Source: Thalia democratica
Lineage: Eukaryota
Assembly: GCA_965202585.1 (NCBI GenBank)
Contig: OZ241826.1
Location: 19,282,001-19,346,000 of the forward strand
Direction of reading: 5' to 3'
DNA length: 64,000 nt
Part shown: piece after piece, positions 1,601 through 16,784 of the stretch
Position numbering within the stretch: position 1 is the first letter of the stretch
How the letters are laid out: each line of letters opens with the position of its first letter
The notes under the pieces: generated by a model
Databases searched by the model: none
Told to the model about the DNA's origin: nothing
What the model saw: only the letters and a program-made list of their open reading frames with translations
Program-made: the position numbers and the translations under genes

Positions 1601-3582
1601 TATAGTTGTAAAACTACTAGCTTAACTAAAAATATACCTTAATTATTTTTAATTCACTAAATTTAGACTAATTAACTTTTATAAGTTTGGCTACACTTTC
1701 TAAACTGCAGTAAAATTTTATGAACTAAAACACTACAATGTGCCTTTACAGACTTATAACTATTTTAAACAAGTTTTATACTTCAATTTTAGTACTGTCA
1801 ATTTTAAAAAGTTTGTAAAACTAAAATGTATTTTATGGTGATATATATCTAAGTTTTACATTAAACTCTATTATCTTTTAAAATTTAATCTTAGCAAAAT
1901 AAGTAGTATACTATATTCTTTACATTTAATTTTAAAACAACATATGATAAAAGTAGAAGTTTTTAGTTGTTCATGAACTAAATAGTGTTTAGTAGAACTG
2001 TTTGAAACAAAAAAAAAATACAAGCGATGTAACTGTGTTTTATTTATGTTGTTGTTTTTATGTTAAACATTTTAGTAAAAATTATGTTATTAGAAACATA
2101 ATCAGTGTTTTTATAAAACTTAAGTTTAATGATTAATTCTACTAGCAAGCTCAATAAAAACAAATTTTGCATCTGAACTAAATTGTTATTGAAAAACAGT
2201 TAACCTAAATAAACAAACAGTTTTACTATACTAAAAAAACGACAAAATTGAGGAAAAAAATGGGGATGTTTGAAAATAAGTAAAAAAATCAGTAACTTGG
2301 AAAAAATGTCAGATTTTGTCTGTTTAACAAAATTCCTTATTTACCAAAGCCTTATAAAAGTAAAAATGTAATTAAACATCCTCTAAAGTCAGACTAAAAC
2401 TGCAACATATTCCTAAAAAATTACAAAATTACCTACTTTTGAATGCCTTCATCTAGTAAAAATTAGTGTAATTACACAGATAACCTAAAAATCACAAACA
2501 GTTTTTAGTATTGATGATCTGTTGCAAGGACACTTGGATAGTGAAATTATGATGCATACACAAAATTAAACTTGCAGAATTTCAGAATCAAATCTTTTTT
2601 TTTGCTTAACTAAATAGTTAAGTTCTTTATAATTAGGTTCTAAGTTTAGTATCTTGTGTAACAAATTTTTGTGTATACTTTACCTGTTTATAACTTTCTC
2701 AAAATTGTTAAAATTTGAAAAGTGGTTGTAAGACAGATATATGCCATGGTTAAGTTTACTCGTTTTTTGAATTTTTTGTAGAATAACTGAAGTTTTTAAA
2801 ATAAAAAAAAAAGGTCTGTTTGTTGCAAATTTATAGTTAATGGTTATAGAAAATATAAAATTGAAAACTTTATATAGTTTTAAGTGTTTGATTGTGTGTA
2901 TTAAAACACTTTGAATTAAGAATCTGATTTAGAAAAGTCAGGAAACCTTTAATAAAATGTTAGAAAAAAGTTATGAATTTTTTCTCAGCTTGATCTGTGG
3001 CAACCCTGATGTACAGATAATAAAATGGTTATCACCAGTTTATCATGCGCAGTTTTTAAAGTTTTCTGGATTTGTTATTTAAACTCTCACAACTTTAAAA
3101 AATAAGGTTTTATATTATATCTAAACGTCAAGTATGTATTGCAAAAACTTGTTTTCAGTCATGCTCTTTTTAATTTAAAATTTAAAAAACATGTTTACAT
3201 CATATAATAAATTTCAGACAATATTACTAAATAAGTTAACTAAATACAATGGACATATAAAAGAGTAGCTCGTACATAGATTCTTCTCCTAATGTGTGTA
3301 AAACCAGTACCCTTATAATTTAAAACACGAGAAGTAAAAATGTTTAGTTCCAAAAAAAAAATTAGACAGCTACTCTTAAACAATTACCGTACTATTTTAT
3401 ATACAAATCATAAGATTTAAAAAAAATTTACTTATACTATTTTAAAAGATATGGCTTGTAATGTTGACAATACAGTTAACCTATAAAATACAAGTTATGA
3501 ATAAAGTTATACAAACATATAAGTATAATATAAGAATTGAAGCTAAGTATCTTAAAGTTTATGACTCTTTAATGTACAACTA

Positions 3583-3900
3583 AAATAGGGTTACTAAAAA
3601 AAACCTGAATCCTGTAAAAACCCGGAACTCCAAATAATTTTTCTCTTGTAAAGTGGTGAATATTGATAATTTACAAAAATCTGTCATATACAAATAATTT
3701 GTTCTGTATCGATTACAATTCTATTTGTTTTAAAACACATTAAAAGTAGCATTAACGTTTTTTTTTTTGAATATGTTTATACTGTTTATCACCAAAAAGT
3801 TAACTTTATACTAAAAATGTATAAATAAACTTGTAATTTAAAATTAAGAAAAAAAAAACCTAAAAAAATTTTAAAGTTGTTTGTCAAACCTGTTTAATTA
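3583..3900. mobile_element. Degenerate MITE, AGGGTTGCCA-ended family
   Basis: Starts tagggttactaaaaaaaacctgaatcctgtaaaaacccggaa, the same aaaacctggaa subterminal pattern as 6342 and 8379. Confidence 0.45.
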
Positions 3901-4712
3901 AACATACTTAATATTTTAAAACCTAAAACTTTTGATTACTTGTATAAAACAAGTTAATATTTTTTAACGATTGTTAGACACAAGTATGGTTCCCACTCAA
4001 AACTTGCAATAAAAGGGATTAAATAACAAAATACTTAAATCTAAACTTTTTTCATATTTGCTGACCAATATTCAATTATACAACCAAGTTTTTGTGGTGT
4101 TTTTTTGATTTATTGTGGTAATTTTGAATTATGTTTAGTAGCAAATTGATTAGAGTGTTCAGATTTAAAACATCTAGGAACACACTATTAACGTTTTTTT
4201 ATAGATCAATAAATTTGTAGTAACCAAGTTTTTAAATTTTTAAATTCTTATCAGTTAAAAAAAGACTGTATTTAAATCTAACTTAAAAACCTTAACAAAA
4301 TAATATTGTATTTTATACATTTTTTTACCTTTTTTTTAGTTATTAGTTCATAAGTTGAAATAAAATAGCAAACTAATTATTTTTATGATGCAAGTTAGGC
4401 AAACATACTTATTTATAAAAATAAATCAGATTTTAAAAGTAAATAACTAGTGTTTTTAATTTTTGGTAAATGCTAAAAGCATGGTTTCAGTATATTTTAA
4501 ATTATTTTTTTGGTAAAAAACTAAATTAAATAAAATTATTAAAAAAATTGCTTTTTTTACAAGTTTTTATTATCAGTTATATGATATCATTGCATTAGTT
4601 ATAATTGTGGTAGATAGAATTTTGATTTAATTTTTTAATCAATAAAAATTTTAGTATTATACAAAGCTGGGCTTAGTACTCATAAAAAACAGTCATTTCT
4701 GATAATATATTT

Positions 4713-4940
4713 TGGGAGCCGCTCAACTCCAACCGTGATTATTTCTCACATGATCAAATTTGAGAACTGCTTGCCGACCAAGGGTAAAGGTTTGTGGTAA
4801 CAGTATAGTAAAAAATACATTTAAAAAACAATGAGAAAAAAAAAGAATAAATAAATGAATAAATAAACATCAGGAATCAAAAAGTTGTTGGTTGAATTTG
4901 TGCCTAGCTGGTATTTAATTGGGTGGGAAATGATCGCGGC
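4713..4940. mobile_element. MITE with GC-rich palindromic ends (same family as 41930-42175)
   Basis: gggagccgctcaactccaaccgtgattatt...gggtgggaaatgatcgcggc matches the reverse complement of 41930-42175 along its length. Confidence 0.7.
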
Positions 4941-6341
4941 TTAAAATTATAGTTATTTTAAGCATTCTAGTTTTGTTTAAACTAAATAACCTATATTAAA
5001 GTAAATACATATTATGATGTCGCACCATTATAGTGCTGAAAATGTTTGGTTAACCTTATTTTCATATTTCCGCTCTATGTCTTTTTTAACTATTCATGTT
5101 TAAATTAAAACTTAATTTCAAAAAAATAATCCTTTAGTCTTTAACATTTTTATTTATAATCATACTAAAATAAAGATTTTTCGCACAATGTTCAACTAAA
5201 GTAAGAACGTGCTTAATACATAAAACAAAAACAGATATTTTGTAAACAAAAGCGATTAAATATTTAATCTTTATTAGTCTATGACGAATAAATTTAACTT
5301 TGTTGTATATATAGCTTGTTTAAAACATTTGGTTTAAATGCTTCGGATGCAATTTTCTCACGTTCAGCCATGCGTAACATAAACTATTTATTTCCCTTCA
5401 GAATTACTAGTGCATCATTCTACTCAAAACTTCCTACAGGTAGCACTAGCCTTATGGTTTACCTAAACTTTTACTGTTTTAAATGTTTCACATAGAGTAT
5501 TTATAAAGAATATTTTTGTTTGTCATAAGTCTTTTTTTGTTTTGTATTAAAACAGTTAATAATTTTTCAAACCATAAATATATAAAAACAATCTAGGTTT
5601 AAGTTTAATTTATTTGATAAGTTACTAATAATTGTAAGTAAGTTAAAATCTAATTGATTTAAACCAAGTATTAAAATATATACAATTAGACTTTATAGAT
5701 ATTGTCTTTATCATAACACAATTTAAGTTTTTTTTTTTATTATATGTGTTTCACTAGATTAGAATCATTAACTTAAATTAAATATAAAAAGACTTGAATA
5801 ATTCTTTCTAGAATACTTTAAAAAAGTTTTTTTTATAGGATTTTTGGTCAGAACTTAGCTAAAAGTTGTTTACTCATAGCTTTTAAGTTGTGAAAAACCT
5901 CAATCTAAAAGGTATTTGTATTTATTTTATCTAGTTGTTAATAAGCAAAAAAAAAATTAAGTATTTTGTTTAATATCTCTAATAGTTATATTGAAAACTA
6001 ATAAATATAGTACTAACTGCTGGATTATTCAAGTATGTAGAAACAAATTTTAAAAGAAGTTAATTTATACTTACAGCTTGTCAAAAGAATCAAGGAAACC
6101 AACCTGTCTTTAACAAACTTCATCAAAGGAAGTTGGACTAAAAACTGAAGTGTTTTAACTTAATATTACTATTTTTTACTTAAATTATTTAAAGTATAGC
6201 ATTAGTTACGGTCATAGAAGGGTGTCACAGTGTATTAACATGTTAATTTTACATTCAATGTTTTTAGTCTAGCTAGCAGTTGTTATTACTGTTTAGTAAG
6301 TTTCAAATTAGATTGTAAAAATTAACACTGAAAAAAATAGG

Positions 6342-8378: not shown

Positions 8379-8762
8379 CAGGGTTACCACAAAACCTGAA
8401 ATTTTACAATTTAAGCTAAAAACTCTTCGAAATTGTGAAATTTTGAAAAAAAAAAGCCTAGAATTTTAAACAGTAATCACTACAAAACCTGGAGTTTTTA
8501 GCAATATTTATCTTTTAAGTAGTAAAATTTTGGTTTCTATCATATAGATATTTTAAAAACATTTTTCATCATTAATTTTATTAATAAAAACACATTTAAA
8601 GTAGCTTTACTTACCATTTTAATTTTAATATACTACTTAACACCATTTTAAAACTTAAAGTTTCATTTAATCTAAAAATAGTCACAAACAAGTGTACTTT
8701 AAAAAGCCTTGGAAAATTTTAGAAAACCTGGAAGAAAATTCTTAAAAACCAGTAACATCACT
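8379..8762. mobile_element. Degenerate MITE, AGGGTTGCCA-ended family
   Basis: cagggttaccacaaaacctgaaatttt...aaaacctggag...aaaacctggaag. Same layout as 6342-6712. Confidence 0.55.
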
Positions 8763-9496
8763 GTTTTTTCGTCTAGCTTTGAAGTCCTTATATGAGACAG
8801 TTATTTTTTTTTAGGTTTCAAGCCTTTATTAACTACATAAAAGTCATTTTTTTTTTAGTTTACACATATTTTCTAACAAATTAAAGGTGATTTAATAAAG
8901 CTATTTTATTGTATCTAACACATTATCAAAATAATTTTGCTGTGTCACACAATTTAGGTAGATTAGAACTTTTGAAAAAACCCAGGGTGGTTGGATTTGC
9001 TCAGGCTCTGATTTTTTGTATTTTTAAAACATGTTTTTTTTTTGTTTTACAAATAATTGTTATTTTAATTTTTTATAGGTGTTTAGTTTTTAGGTTTTAA
9101 GTTTGATAAAAATCATGCTAGTTTTTGAAAATCTTTGAACTTTAATTTCATAAAAGTCAAGCTTTATAAAATTATACTTTATAAATAGCAAGAAATTGAT
9201 TCCGATAAGGCTTAAAAACTTGTAATCTCATTTCTTATTTCTAATAAATTACTGAATGATTATTACAGTTTGATCAGATGAATTTGTAATTAGCTGAATT
9301 AGAGAGTTTTTTTTTAATTTTAAATAGCCCCAAACAATATTAAGTAATAAGAATAAAAAATTTTTATTTAACGCTTAAATTAAAAAACTAAAAATAAAAC
9401 CTAAGTATCCTGTAAATAACAGAATGTGATTTATCATTTATCTTTATTTACAGTAAAGTATTTTGATATTTTTTATAAGTTCTTGAGTTTTTCACT

Positions 9497-9658
9497 TAAC
9501 CTTAAAACTTCTAATAAATTTAAATTATAATTAAGATGTATTTGTATGTTTTAAAATAAACTTATTCTATAGTTTTTTACTAAACCTTAAAACTTATAAA
9601 ACATTTAAAATATAATTAAAATGTTTATACATGTTTTAAAATAAACTTATTCTATAGT
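9497..9658. repeat. Local tandem duplication, 2 x ~85 bp
   Basis: ccttaaaactt...tgttttaaaataaacttattctatagt occurs twice head-to-tail. Confidence 0.8.
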
Positions 9659-10830
9659 CAAATTAACTTAAGTCAAGTGCAGTTTGAATTTATTTTAAAT
9701 ACTTATTGAAACTCAAGCTAGTATATAACTATAATTTCAGGATAACTTTAAGAAATTCTGGCTAGTTTAGGCGTTTTAAAACTTCAGACAAATTTTATTA
9801 AAACTGTCTTAAATTTTGTCTCTAGTAAATTAAGTTTGTAATCTCTTGTTTGTAAATTATAGGTTATCAATCTTAACTAAGAGTGTTAGGTTTTAGTTTT
9901 TGACTTTGAATACTATTTTTAAAATTTATATTGTTAAGAATTTAAGTCTGATATAAGTATGTGTTATAGAATATTAGTTGAACATGCTTTAATAACCTAC
10001 TTGGTTTTTTCTAGAATTTACAAAGATATTACATTAGAATTATGGTTTTTAAGGTATATAAAAACTATATAATCTTACCATATATAAATTAAGAAATTTA
10101 ACTTTTATTTAGAAAACCAACCTAAAAGTACTGTTTCTAGTGCTTACTTTAGTGTGCTTAGTTAATTGAACGTTCCACTAGAAAGATATATTTAAATAAA
10201 TTTCAGCACAACTTTTTAATGCATGGTATTAAAATAGAGTTTTAATAGACCATATAAATTAAGTTTTAAATAGGTAAATATATATTTTTTTTTACCAAAC
10301 AGGTATGTCTAAAATTTAAGATAACATTTTTTGAAATATTTGTTATAAATAAATAGTATAAAAAGTTTTGAAAATTGATTGTTTTCATTAGTTAACTCTT
10401 TTTATAAGTACTAATGTTTAAAAATTATTCAAATAAAAAAATAGGATTAATTACTTGAAACTTTTTATTCTTCAAATTGCAATAATTGTATCATCTAAGA
10501 TTTTAAAAGGTATCCAATTGTGATGCGACTCGATAATTAAAAGGTTCATCGTGCACCAAGTCCTAGGACTAAATATTTTGAGCGTATTTTTTTTATTGTC
10601 TTCAATTAACAAAAAATGTATAACTGTATAACAATTTATTTGTGAAGCTGTTTTAAAATAGATAGTGTTTTATTTAATGTTTGTTTGAATTTTTGTTTTA
10701 TGGTTTTCTATATCAAACTAGTTTATATAATTTTTTAAACATACATACTCGTATGAGAGTAAATTATATACTTTTAGTATTCAAAAACATGTTTTACAGA
10801 AGTCTTATATTTATGATTAATAACTTAAAA

Positions 10831-13800
10831 ATGGACAACAACAAAACTCTAAAAGATGACGGTTGTGAAGTAAGTTTATTTTACAATGTTGTGTAGTTTA
10901 TAAAAACTTAAATACAGAACAGTACTAAAATTTTAGACATGTTTTTTATTTTTAGTACATAGCTCGTTGCAAGTTACAAATAAACTTTTTTATTAAGTTT
11001 TAACCGAATATAAAATAACATACTTTTTTTAAATAGTTTAATAAAACAACAGAATAAATCTACCCTTGGAGAAGATTTAGCTGTGTGCGAGCTTGAAACC
11101 TGTGGAAAGCGAGATCTTAAAAGTAGTTTTTATGGAAAGAAAAGATTCTGTTCAAACAGCTGCGCTCATGCTTACTCAGCTAGCTGTCGCAAGAAAAAAA
11201 GAGAAAAGAAGGAAGTTCGACCGAAAAAGGTAAGAATTTATTTTTTGCTGAAATTTGCTTGAGGTTATTTCTTCGAAAAACGTAGGAGGAGGTAGATTTT
11301 AAGTGATTTCTATTTGTTCGCCGTGTTAGTTTGTGCGTCCTCTAAGGAACATATTGTCTTCTCCAACTTTGACCGGCTGTATCTCAAATGTTGTTTTTAG
11401 TTTAAAACATCTTTATAAAGCTACAACTAGCTTAGTTATAGTTTAATAATATAAGACTAAATACCTAATTTAGCTTTTCTCCTATACCCACATTATATAT
11501 ATTTTAAGTATTGAAATCATAATTACCACGAATTTCAGCAAGCTTATAGGAAAAAGGAAACGATAGCAACTAATGGCAGTAACTCACAAAGACCACCTAT
11601 CAGCATGACTATATCTAGGGTTAGTTTAAATTCTAAAGTTTTCGTAAAACTAAAAAATATCTAGAGACAGTTTTTTATAAAACCTTCTATTTTCCTGAAT
11701 AATGTAGTTAAGTGATTAGATGTGTATAATTACTGTTTTATTAGTATTTCAATCGTAAAAACTTCTAGGTTTATCGTAAAAAATGGAAAGTGACAAAAAT
11801 AGTTAGTGACATCCATTCAGATATACAAAATTACGAACCAAAAAAGGCAACAACTTCAGCGGATGCACAGGTAATTTAAAAAAGTTAATTATGTGTTTGT
11901 AGTTACCTCCGTTATATAAATAAAAACATATACCAACAGCAACTAATAACTTTAATTGAAAAGAGTATATAAAATATAAAAATTCTGATTAGTTATTTGT
12001 TAAAGCTTACAGTTATTATTACACGTTATTTAGTTTCAATACTTTAAATACTTGTTATACATAGAATTAATTATTTTATTGATCCAACTTTCAGATTGGG
12101 AGAAGAAAAAGAAAAGAAACAGATATTAGTGATTCAATACAACCGACTATCGAAAGGAAAAAACAAAAAATTTCCACCACCGAAAAGGTAACTTTAAAAC
12201 TATTTTATTTTTAGTTCACTTTAAAAATTAACTTTTTACTACTATTATTTTTAAACAGTTTTCTAATGACTAGTAAAAATATTTTTATTCATACGTTATC
12301 ATTTATAACAAGATAATATCAATCATGCGTATAGTTACACTAAATAGTGGACTTATAAATTTAAGCATTTAATTTAAACTGAATTATAGTATTTAAACTA
12401 AAACGAAATTAATTAACAACAGCAAGAAAACTTCTATGCAACATGTGAGTGGCACAAATGTGGAGTGAGGAAACTCAGGAAAGATTTCATTGGAAAAAAG
12501 AGATTTTGCTCAACACAATGTGCACACGCGTTTTCAGGAAGCAGAGGGGGTAAAGGTGGAAAAGATAAAAAGAAAATTAAACGAGAAATAAAAATTGAAA
12601 AGAAGTGTGAACCACGATCAAGAGTAAAAAGGCAGCGATTAAATAAAAAAATATTGGCTGAAAACAATGCTATACAAGAAGTAGCAGAACAATTAAATAT
12701 GGAAACAGTGGATGATCAACAAGAAACAGCAGATCAAATTGAAACTCCTGCAGATAAGTAAGCAGTTTAATTATTTGTTAGAATAAACTTTTAAAAACAA
12801 TGTAGCTAAATTTAGAAACTACTTATGTACATTAAATAAATGCTATAATACTGTATATATATATATATTTTGAAGTTTTAACAAGGTTTTCTATTAACTC
12901 ACGTAAAACAAAAATCTTTAAAAGTTTATTTTTGCATATAGTTTATTTTTTACATTAAAAGCCTAAAAGAGTATACAACAACTTTTCCTTAACTTATGTT
13001 TACCTTTTGACTTTTTTGCAGTGAGAACGACCATTACCAAAGACAATATCCTGATCTACCAAGAAAAAGTAACTTCTGGAAAGAAGTCTTTCACAATGGA
13101 TTTCATGGTGGTGATTATTACAATGATTATTTAGATGGGCATTGTCATGAAATTCTTGATCGAATTTATATGGTCCTTTCACAAAAATATTACATGAACG
13201 CTTTCAAATCAGTCTTTGAGGTTAGTACAAAACTTAATGAAATATTTGATAAAAATTTGTTTATAAAATTGATTAAACTAAAAATTATTTGTTTTTAACA
13301 GCCACTCTTGAAAAGTATGAAGACACATGAACCAGAACTCACTAAGCAAGAGTTGAAATTGCGAAAGTACGAAATATTCGATAGACTCGTCGTGGCAGTG
13401 ATTGGCGCCTTCAACAAATATGGTGTTGAGTGTTACAACTTGTTCAGCAACAACGGAACCCACCAACCAAATCCTGAGTTTGATGAAAGCAAAAAGGATG
13501 ATCTGGAAGATCGACTTTATTCACACCTTAGAGACGAATTCATTGATTTACTCGAAAACCAGCAAAGTGAAAACGAGCTCGGTTCAGACGAACTCGACAG
13601 ATGCCTGCAAGGATTCACTGACCTTGTTGACAGTGATGCAATTTACCAGACTTCCATCATTATGAACATCATCAAAGGTATTATTCAAATTTATACAATA
13701 TGTCGTATATAAAAATTAACTACACTTTTACCGATGTTTTATTCAATTTTGCATATTATATTATTTTAATATTATTATTGCATACACATAATTTGAAAAT

Positions 13801-14098
13801 CTGTTTAGCGGTGAAACTGAGTAATTATAATTTAGGTAGTAAACTACATTTTAAACATATGAATCTTTAATTTAAACTGATTCCTGTGATATACTTGTTT
13901 CAACCATATATCTGATCAGGTTACCAAATTCCTGCTGATCCAGTAAAACACCTTAAAAGTGCAGTTGCCGGCATCTTGATGGAAAATTTCAAAAAACAAA
14001 GGTTCTTTGTAAAGCGCTCGAAACAAGAAACTACTGCTGTTTCTAAGAAAGCCAGGAGTTCAGGATACATGTCAGATTTTGCTGACGGGGACTGCTAG
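10831..14098 (+). CDS. Nine-exon gene, 526-aa nuclear protein with two FCS-type zinc fingers and an unknown C-terminal domain
   Basis: join(10831..10869,11053..11229,11539..11619,11769..11870,12095..12187,12423..12757,13022..13220,13302..13677,13920..14098) = 1581 nt. All introns are GT-AG, phases are consistent and there is no internal stop. Starts MDNNKTLKDDGCE, ends DFADGDC*. Fingers: CELETCGKRDLKSSFYGKKRFCSNSCAHAYS and CEWHKCGVRKLRKDFIGKKRFCSTQCAHAFS. Several K/R-rich NLS-like tracts. Confidence 0.88.
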
Positions 14099-14840
14099 AG
14101 AGAAAAAGTGTTATGCTAACACGACTAAGTATTAATACTTTTAGCAAAAAATTTATTTCTAAATTAGCATGAAGTTGTAGAATTAGTTATCTCTTAGTTT
14201 TTATAGTTAATAATAAAAGTTTTTGTATAAATACTTTTTCTGAAAGACTATCTATTGTCCAAAAAATTGCTATAGTTTAAGAAAGTAGAACTAGTTTTAA
14301 TAAAGTATGCGATTTTTTAATACTGGTCAGAATTTCTATTATCTTATTTAGTGCTGGTGTGTTAATGTATCAATAAATAAAAATATAAAAACTCTACGGC
14401 ATGTTTCGTAAATTTATAGACTATCTATAAAAGTACATATTTCTGATATAATATAAAATTTTAGTAAAAGTTCTTAAACTTTGAAATGTTACCTTAAAAC
14501 ATTTGATTTAATATCTAAAAATATAATTTAGAACTACTTTTCAAAAATTTTTATTTAAAATCGAAGGTGTAAAACTGTTTAGCCTATTGTATTAGCCTTA
14601 TTTTAACTATTACTTCACTTAGTAAAAACTTACGTATGTATTTTGTTTTATGACCTCTGAGCCTAAGTTTTATGCTAACAAAAATATTTAAGCTAATGAT
14701 TTCAAAGCATAAGCTAAATTGTCAGCTTTTGAATAACAACTTATTTCTTGCTAGCTGGGTACAAGATCGACCACTTATATTGAAGTTTAAACAATAAATT
14801 TCTAAAGAGCTTCACACTTAAGGAGCCTTTATACAATTAT

Positions 14841-15022
14841 GACAAAAGTTAAATTGTTAAAAAGCTTATTACTTAACAATTGTTTCACGCTAGAGCGATG
14901 ATCACAAGTAAAAAAGTAATTAAACTTACTTTTTGTCTTTGTTTGTTTACTTTATTTTTACTTGTGATCATCGCTCTAGCGTAAAAAAATTGTAAAGTAA
15001 TAAACTCAATTTAACTTTTGTC
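14841..15022. repeat. 182-bp fold-back (imperfect palindrome)
   Basis: acgctagagcgatgatcacaagtaaaaa (from 14887) pairs perfectly with tttttacttgtgatcatcgctctagcgt (ending 14982). Outer gacaaaagttaaattg (14841) pairs with caatttaacttttgtc (15007-15022). Confidence 0.85.
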
Positions 15023-15514
15023 TAAATCGACAACTTATATACAAAAAAATTCTTAAAATATTTTGTTTAATATTTTTTGCCACTCATTTATAAAAACTAA
15101 AATTTCCGTTTTTATAACGTGTGAAATTTTCAAACCTGATTTATCTAACCCATCTAATAAAAACTAGAAACTAAGCACCAACGCAAATTGTACACTTGAA
15201 TAATTTAAGAGAAATATTAAAGTTAACACTTTGTTTTGATCGATATTTTTGTTGCAATATTAACTTATTAGTTTTAATTCCATTTAGAAACTGACTGATC
15301 TAAAGCTCATTAAATACTTACATATAACCTGCAAAATTGAATATTTTTGCACTATTTTTATTTTAAACCTAGGTTTTCGAACTTTTTTTAAAGACCCTTT
15401 TTAAAAAAGAGCTATTACCCTGTTTAAATAATTACTCAAAAACTACCATTAAAAACGCCTAAGACCTTTTTTTAGCTCTTATCTTCAACTCAAGAATATC
15501 TAGTATAAGTTTCA

Positions 15515-15598
15515 AATCATGACCTCATGGCCCCTAAATTTCTGCCATGGACCCCGATGGGGCCACTTTGCCCACTATAGGAAACCCTGCTCTAAACG
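15515..15598 (-). mobile_element. Terminal relic of a CAGGGTTTCC-ended DNA transposon (hAT-like)
   Basis: GC-rich island. Minus strand reads cagggtttcctatagtgggcaaagtggccccatcggggtcccatggc, resembling hAT MITE ends. No partner end found. Confidence 0.4.
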
Positions 15599-16784
15599 TT
15601 GTTAAGTAAGCTTCATGAACAAGTTTTGAAGTTAAGTTTATTAAAGTTTTAAAATTTTTTACCTTGTAGTTCTTATTAAAAGTTAGCAAACATATAATTA
15701 TAAAATTACTTTCTATAAGCTTATTGATTTTATTTTTGTTATATACCACTTAGACAAAACATCATCAAAGCAAGTTTGAAATAAATTGTCCTAAAAATAA
15801 TCAAAATAAAATTTTAAACTAAAGTAGCATGAATCTATAAGTTAAATAAAAACAGTTCACTTGTACTAATTAGTCCTTAAACACAGGCTACCTTAATATA
15901 AAGCACTTTCCTACATACAACTACTACATGGTAGAAGTTTGCTCGCATAAACTTTTTATGACGCATTCTAAGCGCTACAGCGACGTCATGCGTTTTTATT
16001 TCGCGAATTGAATCGTCGATTTTGTCCAAAAATACTTGCTATAAATTAATAACTAATGAAAGTTATTCCATATTTTTATTTTGGTCAAAACTTTGCAGCA
16101 AGCACAAGCTTGTTAAAATTATTCAAGTTTTTAAAAATTCTGACCCTGAATATTTTGTTTGCCTTAAATTAAAATTAATAATTAAACATATTTTTTGAAA
16201 AGTTATTGTTTAGAAATAAAATTTTTATTTTTCTATAAACGTAAAAAATTTAGTATAGAAATTTTGAACTAAATTTAACTAAAGCTTTTTACAAGTAAAT
16301 TAAATTTACTAACTGCATTGGTTATCATGTCTACTTTATTAAGGCACAAAGTTTGTTTAATTATTATTTTATTAACGTTTAAGTTTGGTATTATTCTGTT
16401 ATTAAAAAGTAAATAATTCAACAATTAAAGTTAAGTTGAGTGCTTATAAAAATAATTTATGTAATTAGTTACTAAAAACACAAAAAGTGTTTATTTTTTG
16501 CTTTTAAAAAATGGTTTAATTAGATCGCAATTTTTTGTAAGCAGAAATGGTCCACGTTTGAAAAGCTGATAAAACTGAAGAATATTTAAATTTTTAAATA
16601 AAGTGGTGTTACTGTTTGAGAACTTTAATTTATTACGGAATGTGCAAAATTAATTAGAAACTTTGCTAATTTATTATTATAAAATATCTTAAAAAAGATA
16701 CTCGAAATTTAAAACGTTTAGTAGTTTTTAATACATATAAAGTACTTAAATATTTATTTCTTTAATATACAACAGAAATTGATT

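Follow-up and report, generated by a model that had tools for sequence, protein, structure and literature searches.

The window, that is, the whole 64,000-nucleotide stretch analysed here (C1:19,282,001-19,346,000, with the contigs of its assembly written C1, C2 and so on), carries on its plus strand a nine-exon gene at 10831-14098, whose product has two FCS-class zinc fingers joined to basic tracts and to a C-terminal region peculiar to its family. A first-pass annotation had placed nine exons here, and all of them stand: the introns are of the GT...AG type without exception (8/8), and the joined frame gives a coding sequence of 1581 nucleotides (nt) that runs open for 526 amino acids (aa) to a TAG stop (Table 1). 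At ~23% G+C, ~9% of random codons would be stops, so that chance would very seldom leave exons of 125 and 111 codons free of stops (we estimate ~7e-6 for 125 stop-free codons). Dozens of paralogs preserve the same exon boundaries, reading frames and splice sites. Among the three near copies described below, exon 1 retains 84-95% nt identity along with its GT donor, and the linker exons 3-5 are kept together with their splice sites. The locus is a real, intact protein-coding gene. The basic tracts reported earlier as following the fingers are likewise present (RKKKR, RRKRK, KDKKKIKREIKIEKK and KRQR): the linker of exons 3-5 is basic and of low complexity, with RRKRK and KKQK tracts and an isoelectric point (pI) of 10.3, the tract after finger 2 reaches a pI of 10.9, and the C-terminal region, which comes after a stretch of pI 4.1, is mildly acidic.

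Table 1. Exons of the FCS-finger gene in window coordinates, with the number of matches that four exon queries gave in the assembly
Exon	Position	Strand	Content	Matches in assembly
1	10831-10869	+	Putative start codon, 13 codons MDNNKTLKDDGCE; further in-frame ATGs upstream	
2	11053-11229	+	Phase 0; FCS finger 1, then basic tract RKKKREKKEVRPKK	101
3	11539-11619	+	Linker	
4	11769-11870	+	Linker	
5	12095-12187	+	Linker; indel-prone among near copies	
6	12423-12757	+	Phase 0; FCS finger 2, Gly/Lys-rich basic tract (pI 10.9), then acidic stretch (pI 4.1)	104
7	13022-13220	+	First part of the family-specific helical C-terminal domain	66
8	13302-13677	+	Core of the C-terminal helical domain	74
9	13920-14098	+	Last helix YQIPxDPxK.L.KA...FKKQ+FF, basic spacer, acidic tail Y-M-SDFADGDC, TAG	

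Each finger opens a phase-0 exon and follows the pattern C-x4-C-G-x9-GKKRFCS-x2-CAHA, exactly as first described; this is realised as C-ELET-C-G-x9-GKKRFCS-NS-CAHA in finger 1 (exon 2) and as C-EWHK-C-G-x9-GKKRFCS-TQ-CAHA in finger 2 (exon 6), the two being ~50% identical. Here and throughout, the queries were exon pieces or regional alignments rather than the full 526-aa protein. Finger 1 matches the Pfam zf-FCS_1 family (PF21319) at 27.2 bits (E 4.2e-6), over the curated cut-off of 26.6 bits, and a phmmer search of the PDB recovered the FCS fingers of L3MBTL2 (2w0t, E 7e-5) and PHC1 (2l8e, E 1e-3) and nothing else. Aligned to the L3MBTL2 finger, the family fingers have two extra residues in their first zinc knuckle (C-x4-C versus C-x2-C), with the F-C-S-x2-C half exact in both, and the four cysteines and the KRFCS core are kept in every family finger inspected (28/28). 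The MYM-type zf-FCS (PF06467) of the ZMYM proteins, where it usually occurs in tandem arrays, did not appear among the matches of either finger exon, with a threshold as lax as E <= 10. By these sequence criteria we assign both fingers to the FCS class, of the PHC/L3MBTL2 type that had been proposed for them, with an atypical knuckle and predicted zinc binding.

The C-terminal region (~245 aa, exons 7-9) had been set down as unrecognised, and so it has stayed across sequence and structure searches. No Pfam family was found for the C-terminal exons of the gene or among 32 homologs, nor did the PDB yield any sequence or profile match. Exon 7 is its best conserved part, with ~70% identity across subfamilies, and is predicted at low confidence to be helical; paralogs and metagenome relatives alike retain the intron that follows it. 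An AlphaFold2 model of the exon 8+9 stretch, built for a metagenome relative that is 52% identical to exon 8 of the window (32-row alignment), gave six helices with a disordered loop and tail (predicted local distance difference test, pLDDT, 79.8; predicted template modelling score, pTM, 0.74). Foldseek searches with this model produced no convincing match either among AFDB clusters (best E 0.25) or in the PDB (best E 0.39), with template modelling (TM) scores of at most 0.41, and a shape search of the ESM Atlas returned one 750-aa permease, with a TM of 0.51 scaled to the query and 0.15 scaled to the permease, all other rows being at or below 0.40. A feature search of the same atlas listed G-alpha rows at 0.87 with low recognition, which we dropped, and nothing for the divergent paralog on C5. 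The whole region, modelled through a paralog (L023) that reads in frame through intron 7, came out poorly (pLDDT 60.2, pTM 0.41), the insert encoded by the intron being modelled as one long, artificial helix; its fold search is meaningless. A homodimer prediction for the exon 8-9 domain scored 0.00 with the family alignment not used, and speaks neither for nor against oligomerisation. The tail Y-[LM]-SDFxDxD-[WCF], followed directly by the stop, is kept in all subfamilies and in the metagenome relatives, which indicates that the C-terminus is fixed and makes it unlikely that SAM or MBT exons lie hidden further downstream. The best explanation of the region, as modelled, is a family-specific all-alpha domain with a conserved acidic-aromatic tail.

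Far from standing alone, the gene belongs to a family of ~45-60 copies. When the assembly that contains the window (801.8 Mb) was searched in six frames, exons 2, 6, 7 and 8 were matched together locus by locus, with order and strand preserved. Exon 8 alone marks 59 loci at E <= 2e-10, of which ~45 are stop-free over the full length, and the genome holds at least 32 finger exons of the first (FCS1) type and ~45 of the second (FCS2). In at least 32 loci an FCS1-type exon lies 1.3-4.2 kb upstream of an FCS2-type exon, and a cluster at C2:87-88 Mb has the FCS2-type finger only. The more distant members are clustered at C1:95.2-96.0, C2:87.2-88.5, C2:79.6-80.4 (many with stops), C6:7.6-9.7 and C6:68.6-69.1 Mb, and there are pseudogene clusters at C1:41.08-41.17 and C2:80.0-80.3 Mb. 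Exons 8 and 9 are fused in many of the paralogs.

Three near copies bear on how the family has grown. The closest, at C1:18.85 Mb, is 96% identical at the nucleotide level across 7.5 kb or more, a span that takes in introns and flanks, and those at C9:49.95 Mb and C4:60.89 Mb are 88-89% identical. Since the copies contain introns, they arose by duplication at the DNA level; on this ground we reject a retrocopy origin and, in view also of flanking open reading frames (ORFs) free of Pfam matches, a transposon-encoded gene. An apparent loss of intron 7 from C8 and C6 copies with long open frames also proved illusory, these frames being in-frame read-throughs of the 81-nt intron. The segmental duplication itself pairs window 8608-16139 with C1:18852000-18859500 (96%), ~440 kb away on the same contig, and its length is a lower bound, given that the alignment reaches both ends of the sister locus as fetched. 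A truncated, rearranged copy lies at C8:10384500-10392500, where the homolog of window 12530-14416 (end of exon 6 to exon 9) is joined directly to that of 3130-6039. Two short segments of the window, 10541-10681 upstream of exon 1 and 11246-11386 in intron 2, have a summed depth of ~50,000-90,000 in genomic runs, against ~300 elsewhere, and look like very high-copy short repeats; the repeat search found no relation between them.

Among the near copies the exons are more conserved than the introns, and Nei-Gojobori dN/dS ratios (omega) of the window gene against the three are 0.45, 0.47 and 0.53. A larger sample comes from 21 copies of the C6 type, all of them free of stops wherever the four main exons could be aligned; in one of them (L047) the FCS2 exon aligned over 56 of 95 residues only, and the 20 copies with all four regions entered the dN/dS analysis. 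Their nine independent sister pairs differ by 267 nonsynonymous and 138 synonymous changes, the latter against ~78 expected under neutrality (z ~7.6). Omega is 0.45 overall and 0.37-0.51 by region, highest in exons 8-9, pointing to purifying selection on the family that is real but moderate.

The first-pass annotation had read the twin finger as an internal exon duplication, citing the shared splice acceptor. The duplication itself is favoured by several lines of evidence, of which that acceptor is the least. Exons 2 and 6 are both of phase 0 and both preceded by the acceptor ...AACAACAG; in other subfamilies the two acceptors differ (ccaacag or ctaacag versus aacacag or ccacag), and they lie 11 and 7 codons ahead of the first cysteine. 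Because of this unequal spacing and lack of conservation, the identical 8-mer adds little and is weak evidence of duplication. More informative is the most divergent paralog, on the minus strand at C5:33651000-33656500 and ~31% identical in exon 8, which has a single finger with the canonical C-x2-C knuckle (CEWCGEEKLKSSFWGKTTFRFCSQNC). It also encodes a basic tract and the C-terminal domain common to the family, and its exon 8 is fused to exon 9. In a maximum-likelihood tree of the C-terminal region, the clade of this C5 type, joined by four metagenome relatives, stands apart from the expanded clade (support 100/98). All fingers of the FCS1 and FCS2 types, for their part, share C-x4-C, GKKRFCS and CAHA at ~50% identity to each other and are mutually closest. 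As the divergent paralog in its separate clade has one C-x2-C finger, these sequence comparisons support a derived origin of the twin arrangement, in which the C-x4-C insertion and then the finger-exon duplication would have occurred within the family, after the split from the single-finger paralog. The C5 gene may be a conserved founder of the family. Its last exon is markedly richer in G+C than that of the window gene, and it has counterparts in metagenome assemblies, one near-identical and one ~90% identical (P0022 and P0005).

Outside its own genome the family surfaces only as anonymous metagenome fragments, in agreement with the lineage restriction suggested in the first-pass annotation. 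A phmmer search with exon 8 against 1.84 billion representative proteins gave eight matches, all ORF fragments of 68-187 aa from ENA metagenome assemblies, and a profile search with a 268-aa alignment against 5.8 billion clusters, covering lengths of ~147-469 aa (a range that excludes the full length of 526 aa), added six further metagenome ORF fragments; neither search returned a UniRef or NCBI protein. Two metagenome contigs that we fetched retain intron 7 and are therefore genomic. Some of the fragments are near-identical to copies in this genome and others only ~37% identical to the C5 gene, a spread which indicates that the family exists in related species. The mitochondrial COX1 gene (C1833:8315-9631) translates cleanly with the ascidian code (AGR as Gly, TGA as Trp, ATA as Met), which identifies the organism as a tunicate; degenerate nuclear COX1 copies with many stops occur at C4:56.84-56.94 Mb and C757:31596-32138. 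Judged from these matches, the family is lineage-restricted, belonging to the tunicate lineage. The literature searched held no paper on FCS zinc fingers in ascidians, and nothing in the databases and literature searched describes this architecture, its orphan domain or its growth to tens of genes.

The reported absence of SAM and MBT domains holds for the gene, its surroundings and every listed family member. No SAM domain was found in any exon at E <= 10, and none of the 25 genomic SAM_1 matches (0/25) lies near the window or a family locus. MBT (PF02820) matches occur genome-wide only at C1:77.35 and C1:54.04 Mb, the window being at C1:19.28-19.35 Mb. In exons 2 and 6 no Pfam family besides FCS was convincing, with no separate HD1 model run. 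Since the defining SAM, MBT or MYM features were tested for and are absent, the gene falls outside the PHC, Scm, Sfmbt, L3MBTL2, MBTD1 and ZMYM families. The genome does have a canonical FCS+MBT gene of the L3MBTL2/Sfmbt/Scm kind at C1:77347608-77358212; its C-x2-C finger (CECCEIVKAREQFYANKKRFCSKSC, C1:77358123-77358212) scores 31.7 bits on Pfam, and the best two of three MBT matches lie ~10 kb downstream of that finger on the same strand.

We favour, at a probability of roughly 0.55, the reading that this is a fast-evolving family of nuclear adaptors that bind nucleic acid or chromatin; on the best reading, the gene does not encode a subunit of a Polycomb complex, and a role as decoy lacks support. 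Each member consists of one or two PHC/L3MBTL2-type FCS fingers, Lys/Arg-rich tracts and the all-alpha C-terminal domain (~245 aa), and the protein would be a nuclear, multivalent binder. Its fingers, through the KRFCS core, and its basic tracts might contact RNA, DNA or chromatin largely irrespective of sequence, as in Ph/PHC1, whose finger binds nucleic acid through a conserved basic residue (PMC13449738). FCS fingers are reported to bind both DNA and RNA with specificity not known, and whether the ligand is DNA, RNA or protein is still unclear according to the same review (PMC13449738). Because the KRFCS core and a basic finger pI are shared with PHC, nucleic-acid binding without sequence specificity is probably the likeliest activity. 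The adaptor part of the reading draws on Scm, whose FCS finger binds the Tudor domain of Pcl directly and acts as a protein-protein interface (Protein Sci 2026, PMC13746325). The helical domain and acidic tail, in turn, may recruit or regulate a partner, and the family appears to have expanded by segmental and tandem duplication and to evolve quickly under moderate constraint.

Several observations weigh against this reading. An omega of 0.45 denotes moderate constraint only. The sister copy at C1:18.85 Mb has a TCA-to-TGA change that makes a stop of the Ser codon in the conserved tail, seven codons short of the normal end, and so removes the tail; individual copies do decay, and the activity of the window copy itself is thus only predicted. 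Finger 2 has the full motif and scores under the Pfam cut-off (17.5 bits, E 4.5e-3), and the C-x4-C knuckle is atypical, so far as sequence goes, with zinc binding only predicted. Both sequencing runs that contain the stretch have contigs covering the introns, and are therefore genomic and silent on splicing, and the two very large protein searches returned no transcript-derived protein with the C-terminal domain. Nuclear location, nucleic-acid binding and the partner are what we infer by analogy only.

Some of these points lend weight to the view that the gene of the window, lying where the DNA is unstable and was duplicated recently, is a duplicate that is silent or in decay, whatever the function of the family at large. 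The segmental duplication of at least 7.5 kb (96%), the premature TGA of the sister, the truncation and rearrangement of the C8 copy, and the loss of frame in the exon 5-6 region of the C9 and C4 copies (as extracted) would all suit such a history, as would the want of RNA support. Against it, the window copy has nine open exons, intact splice sites and the full conserved tail, and its divergence from the near copies shows a synonymous excess; we regard this outcome as unlikely. An alternative at the level of the family is a lineage-specific genome-defence or transposon/RNA-control repertoire comparable to the KRAB, ZAD and FiNZ families, in which conflict would drive the turnover of sequence and the number of copies, with the helical domain as effector or variable recognition part. 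Clustering, high copy number, birth and death with pseudogene clusters, and a fairly high omega (0.45-0.5), highest in exons 8-9, are in keeping with this idea. Yet we know of no FCS finger that reads sequence, no region was seen with omega > 1 (the sole exon value above one rests on 9 changes), and the flanks offer no transposon link, which makes it improbable in our estimation.

The first-pass annotation had itself raised a Polycomb-linked adaptor or decoy, whose fingers would tether the helical domain to Polycomb repressive complexes 1 or 2 (PRC1/PRC2) or compete with genuine FCS proteins. The similarity of the fingers to those of L3MBTL2 and PHC1, the 51% identity to the finger of the genome's own FCS+MBT gene and the demonstrated binding of an FCS finger to a Tudor domain (PMC13746325) are the attractions of this proposal. 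However, SAM and MBT are absent, HD1 did not turn up in the Pfam scan (which was run with no HD1 model), and ~45-60 fast-evolving copies are unexpected for a stoichiometric partner of a conserved complex. Nothing that we found links the gene to PRC1, and the 59 or more clustered loci fit an expanded family better, so that we hold this proposal to be quite improbable and return to a family of nuclear nucleic-acid or chromatin-binding adaptors as the preferred reading.

To our knowledge, FCS fingers occur almost only as single accessory modules of Polycomb proteins. The present family places this finger in a new setting, with a modified knuckle, no SAM or MBT, an orphan helical domain and tens of constrained genes, and thereby amounts to a natural experiment on what an FCS finger does by itself. 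A far bolder proposition is that in pelagic tunicates these genes make up a novel class of regulators acting on chromatin or RNA, the finger having been freed from SAM/MBT, doubled, fused to a new helical fold with its own tail and amplified to ~50 genes as a conflict-driven (transposon/RNA control) or developmental repertoire; we consider it a long shot. The finding remains descriptive, the family being known here from its genes alone and the proposed mechanism being generic. What it offers is a new and sharply bounded family from an animal on which little work has been done.

Comparison with characterised systems brings out both the kinship of the fingers and the novelty of their context. 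L3MBTL2 (2w0t) and the family fingers have the core aVCE..CG...F..K.KRFCS.sC..sYS in common, and the finger of the genome's own FCS+MBT gene is the 51% identical one noted above; these proteins nevertheless have the C-x2-C knuckle and MBT repeats, whereas the family gene has C-x4-C, two fingers and no MBT. Polyhomeotic and PHC1-3 resemble the family in the KRFCS basic core and basic pI of the finger and differ from it in possessing HD1 and SAM; the family gene has no SAM and bears an unrelated helical domain as its C-terminal module, and the one to three PHC copies contrast with tens of family copies. Scm, which provides the precedent for the FCS finger as a protein-protein interface (PMC13746325), has MBT and SAM domains, neither of which is present in the family gene. 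Finally, and as an analogy only, the KRAB-, ZAD- and FiNZ-ZNF families too are clustered birth-and-death genes in tens of copies with a constant private module, though they read DNA with tandem C2H2 arrays, in contrast to the one or two FCS treble-clef fingers of the family described here.

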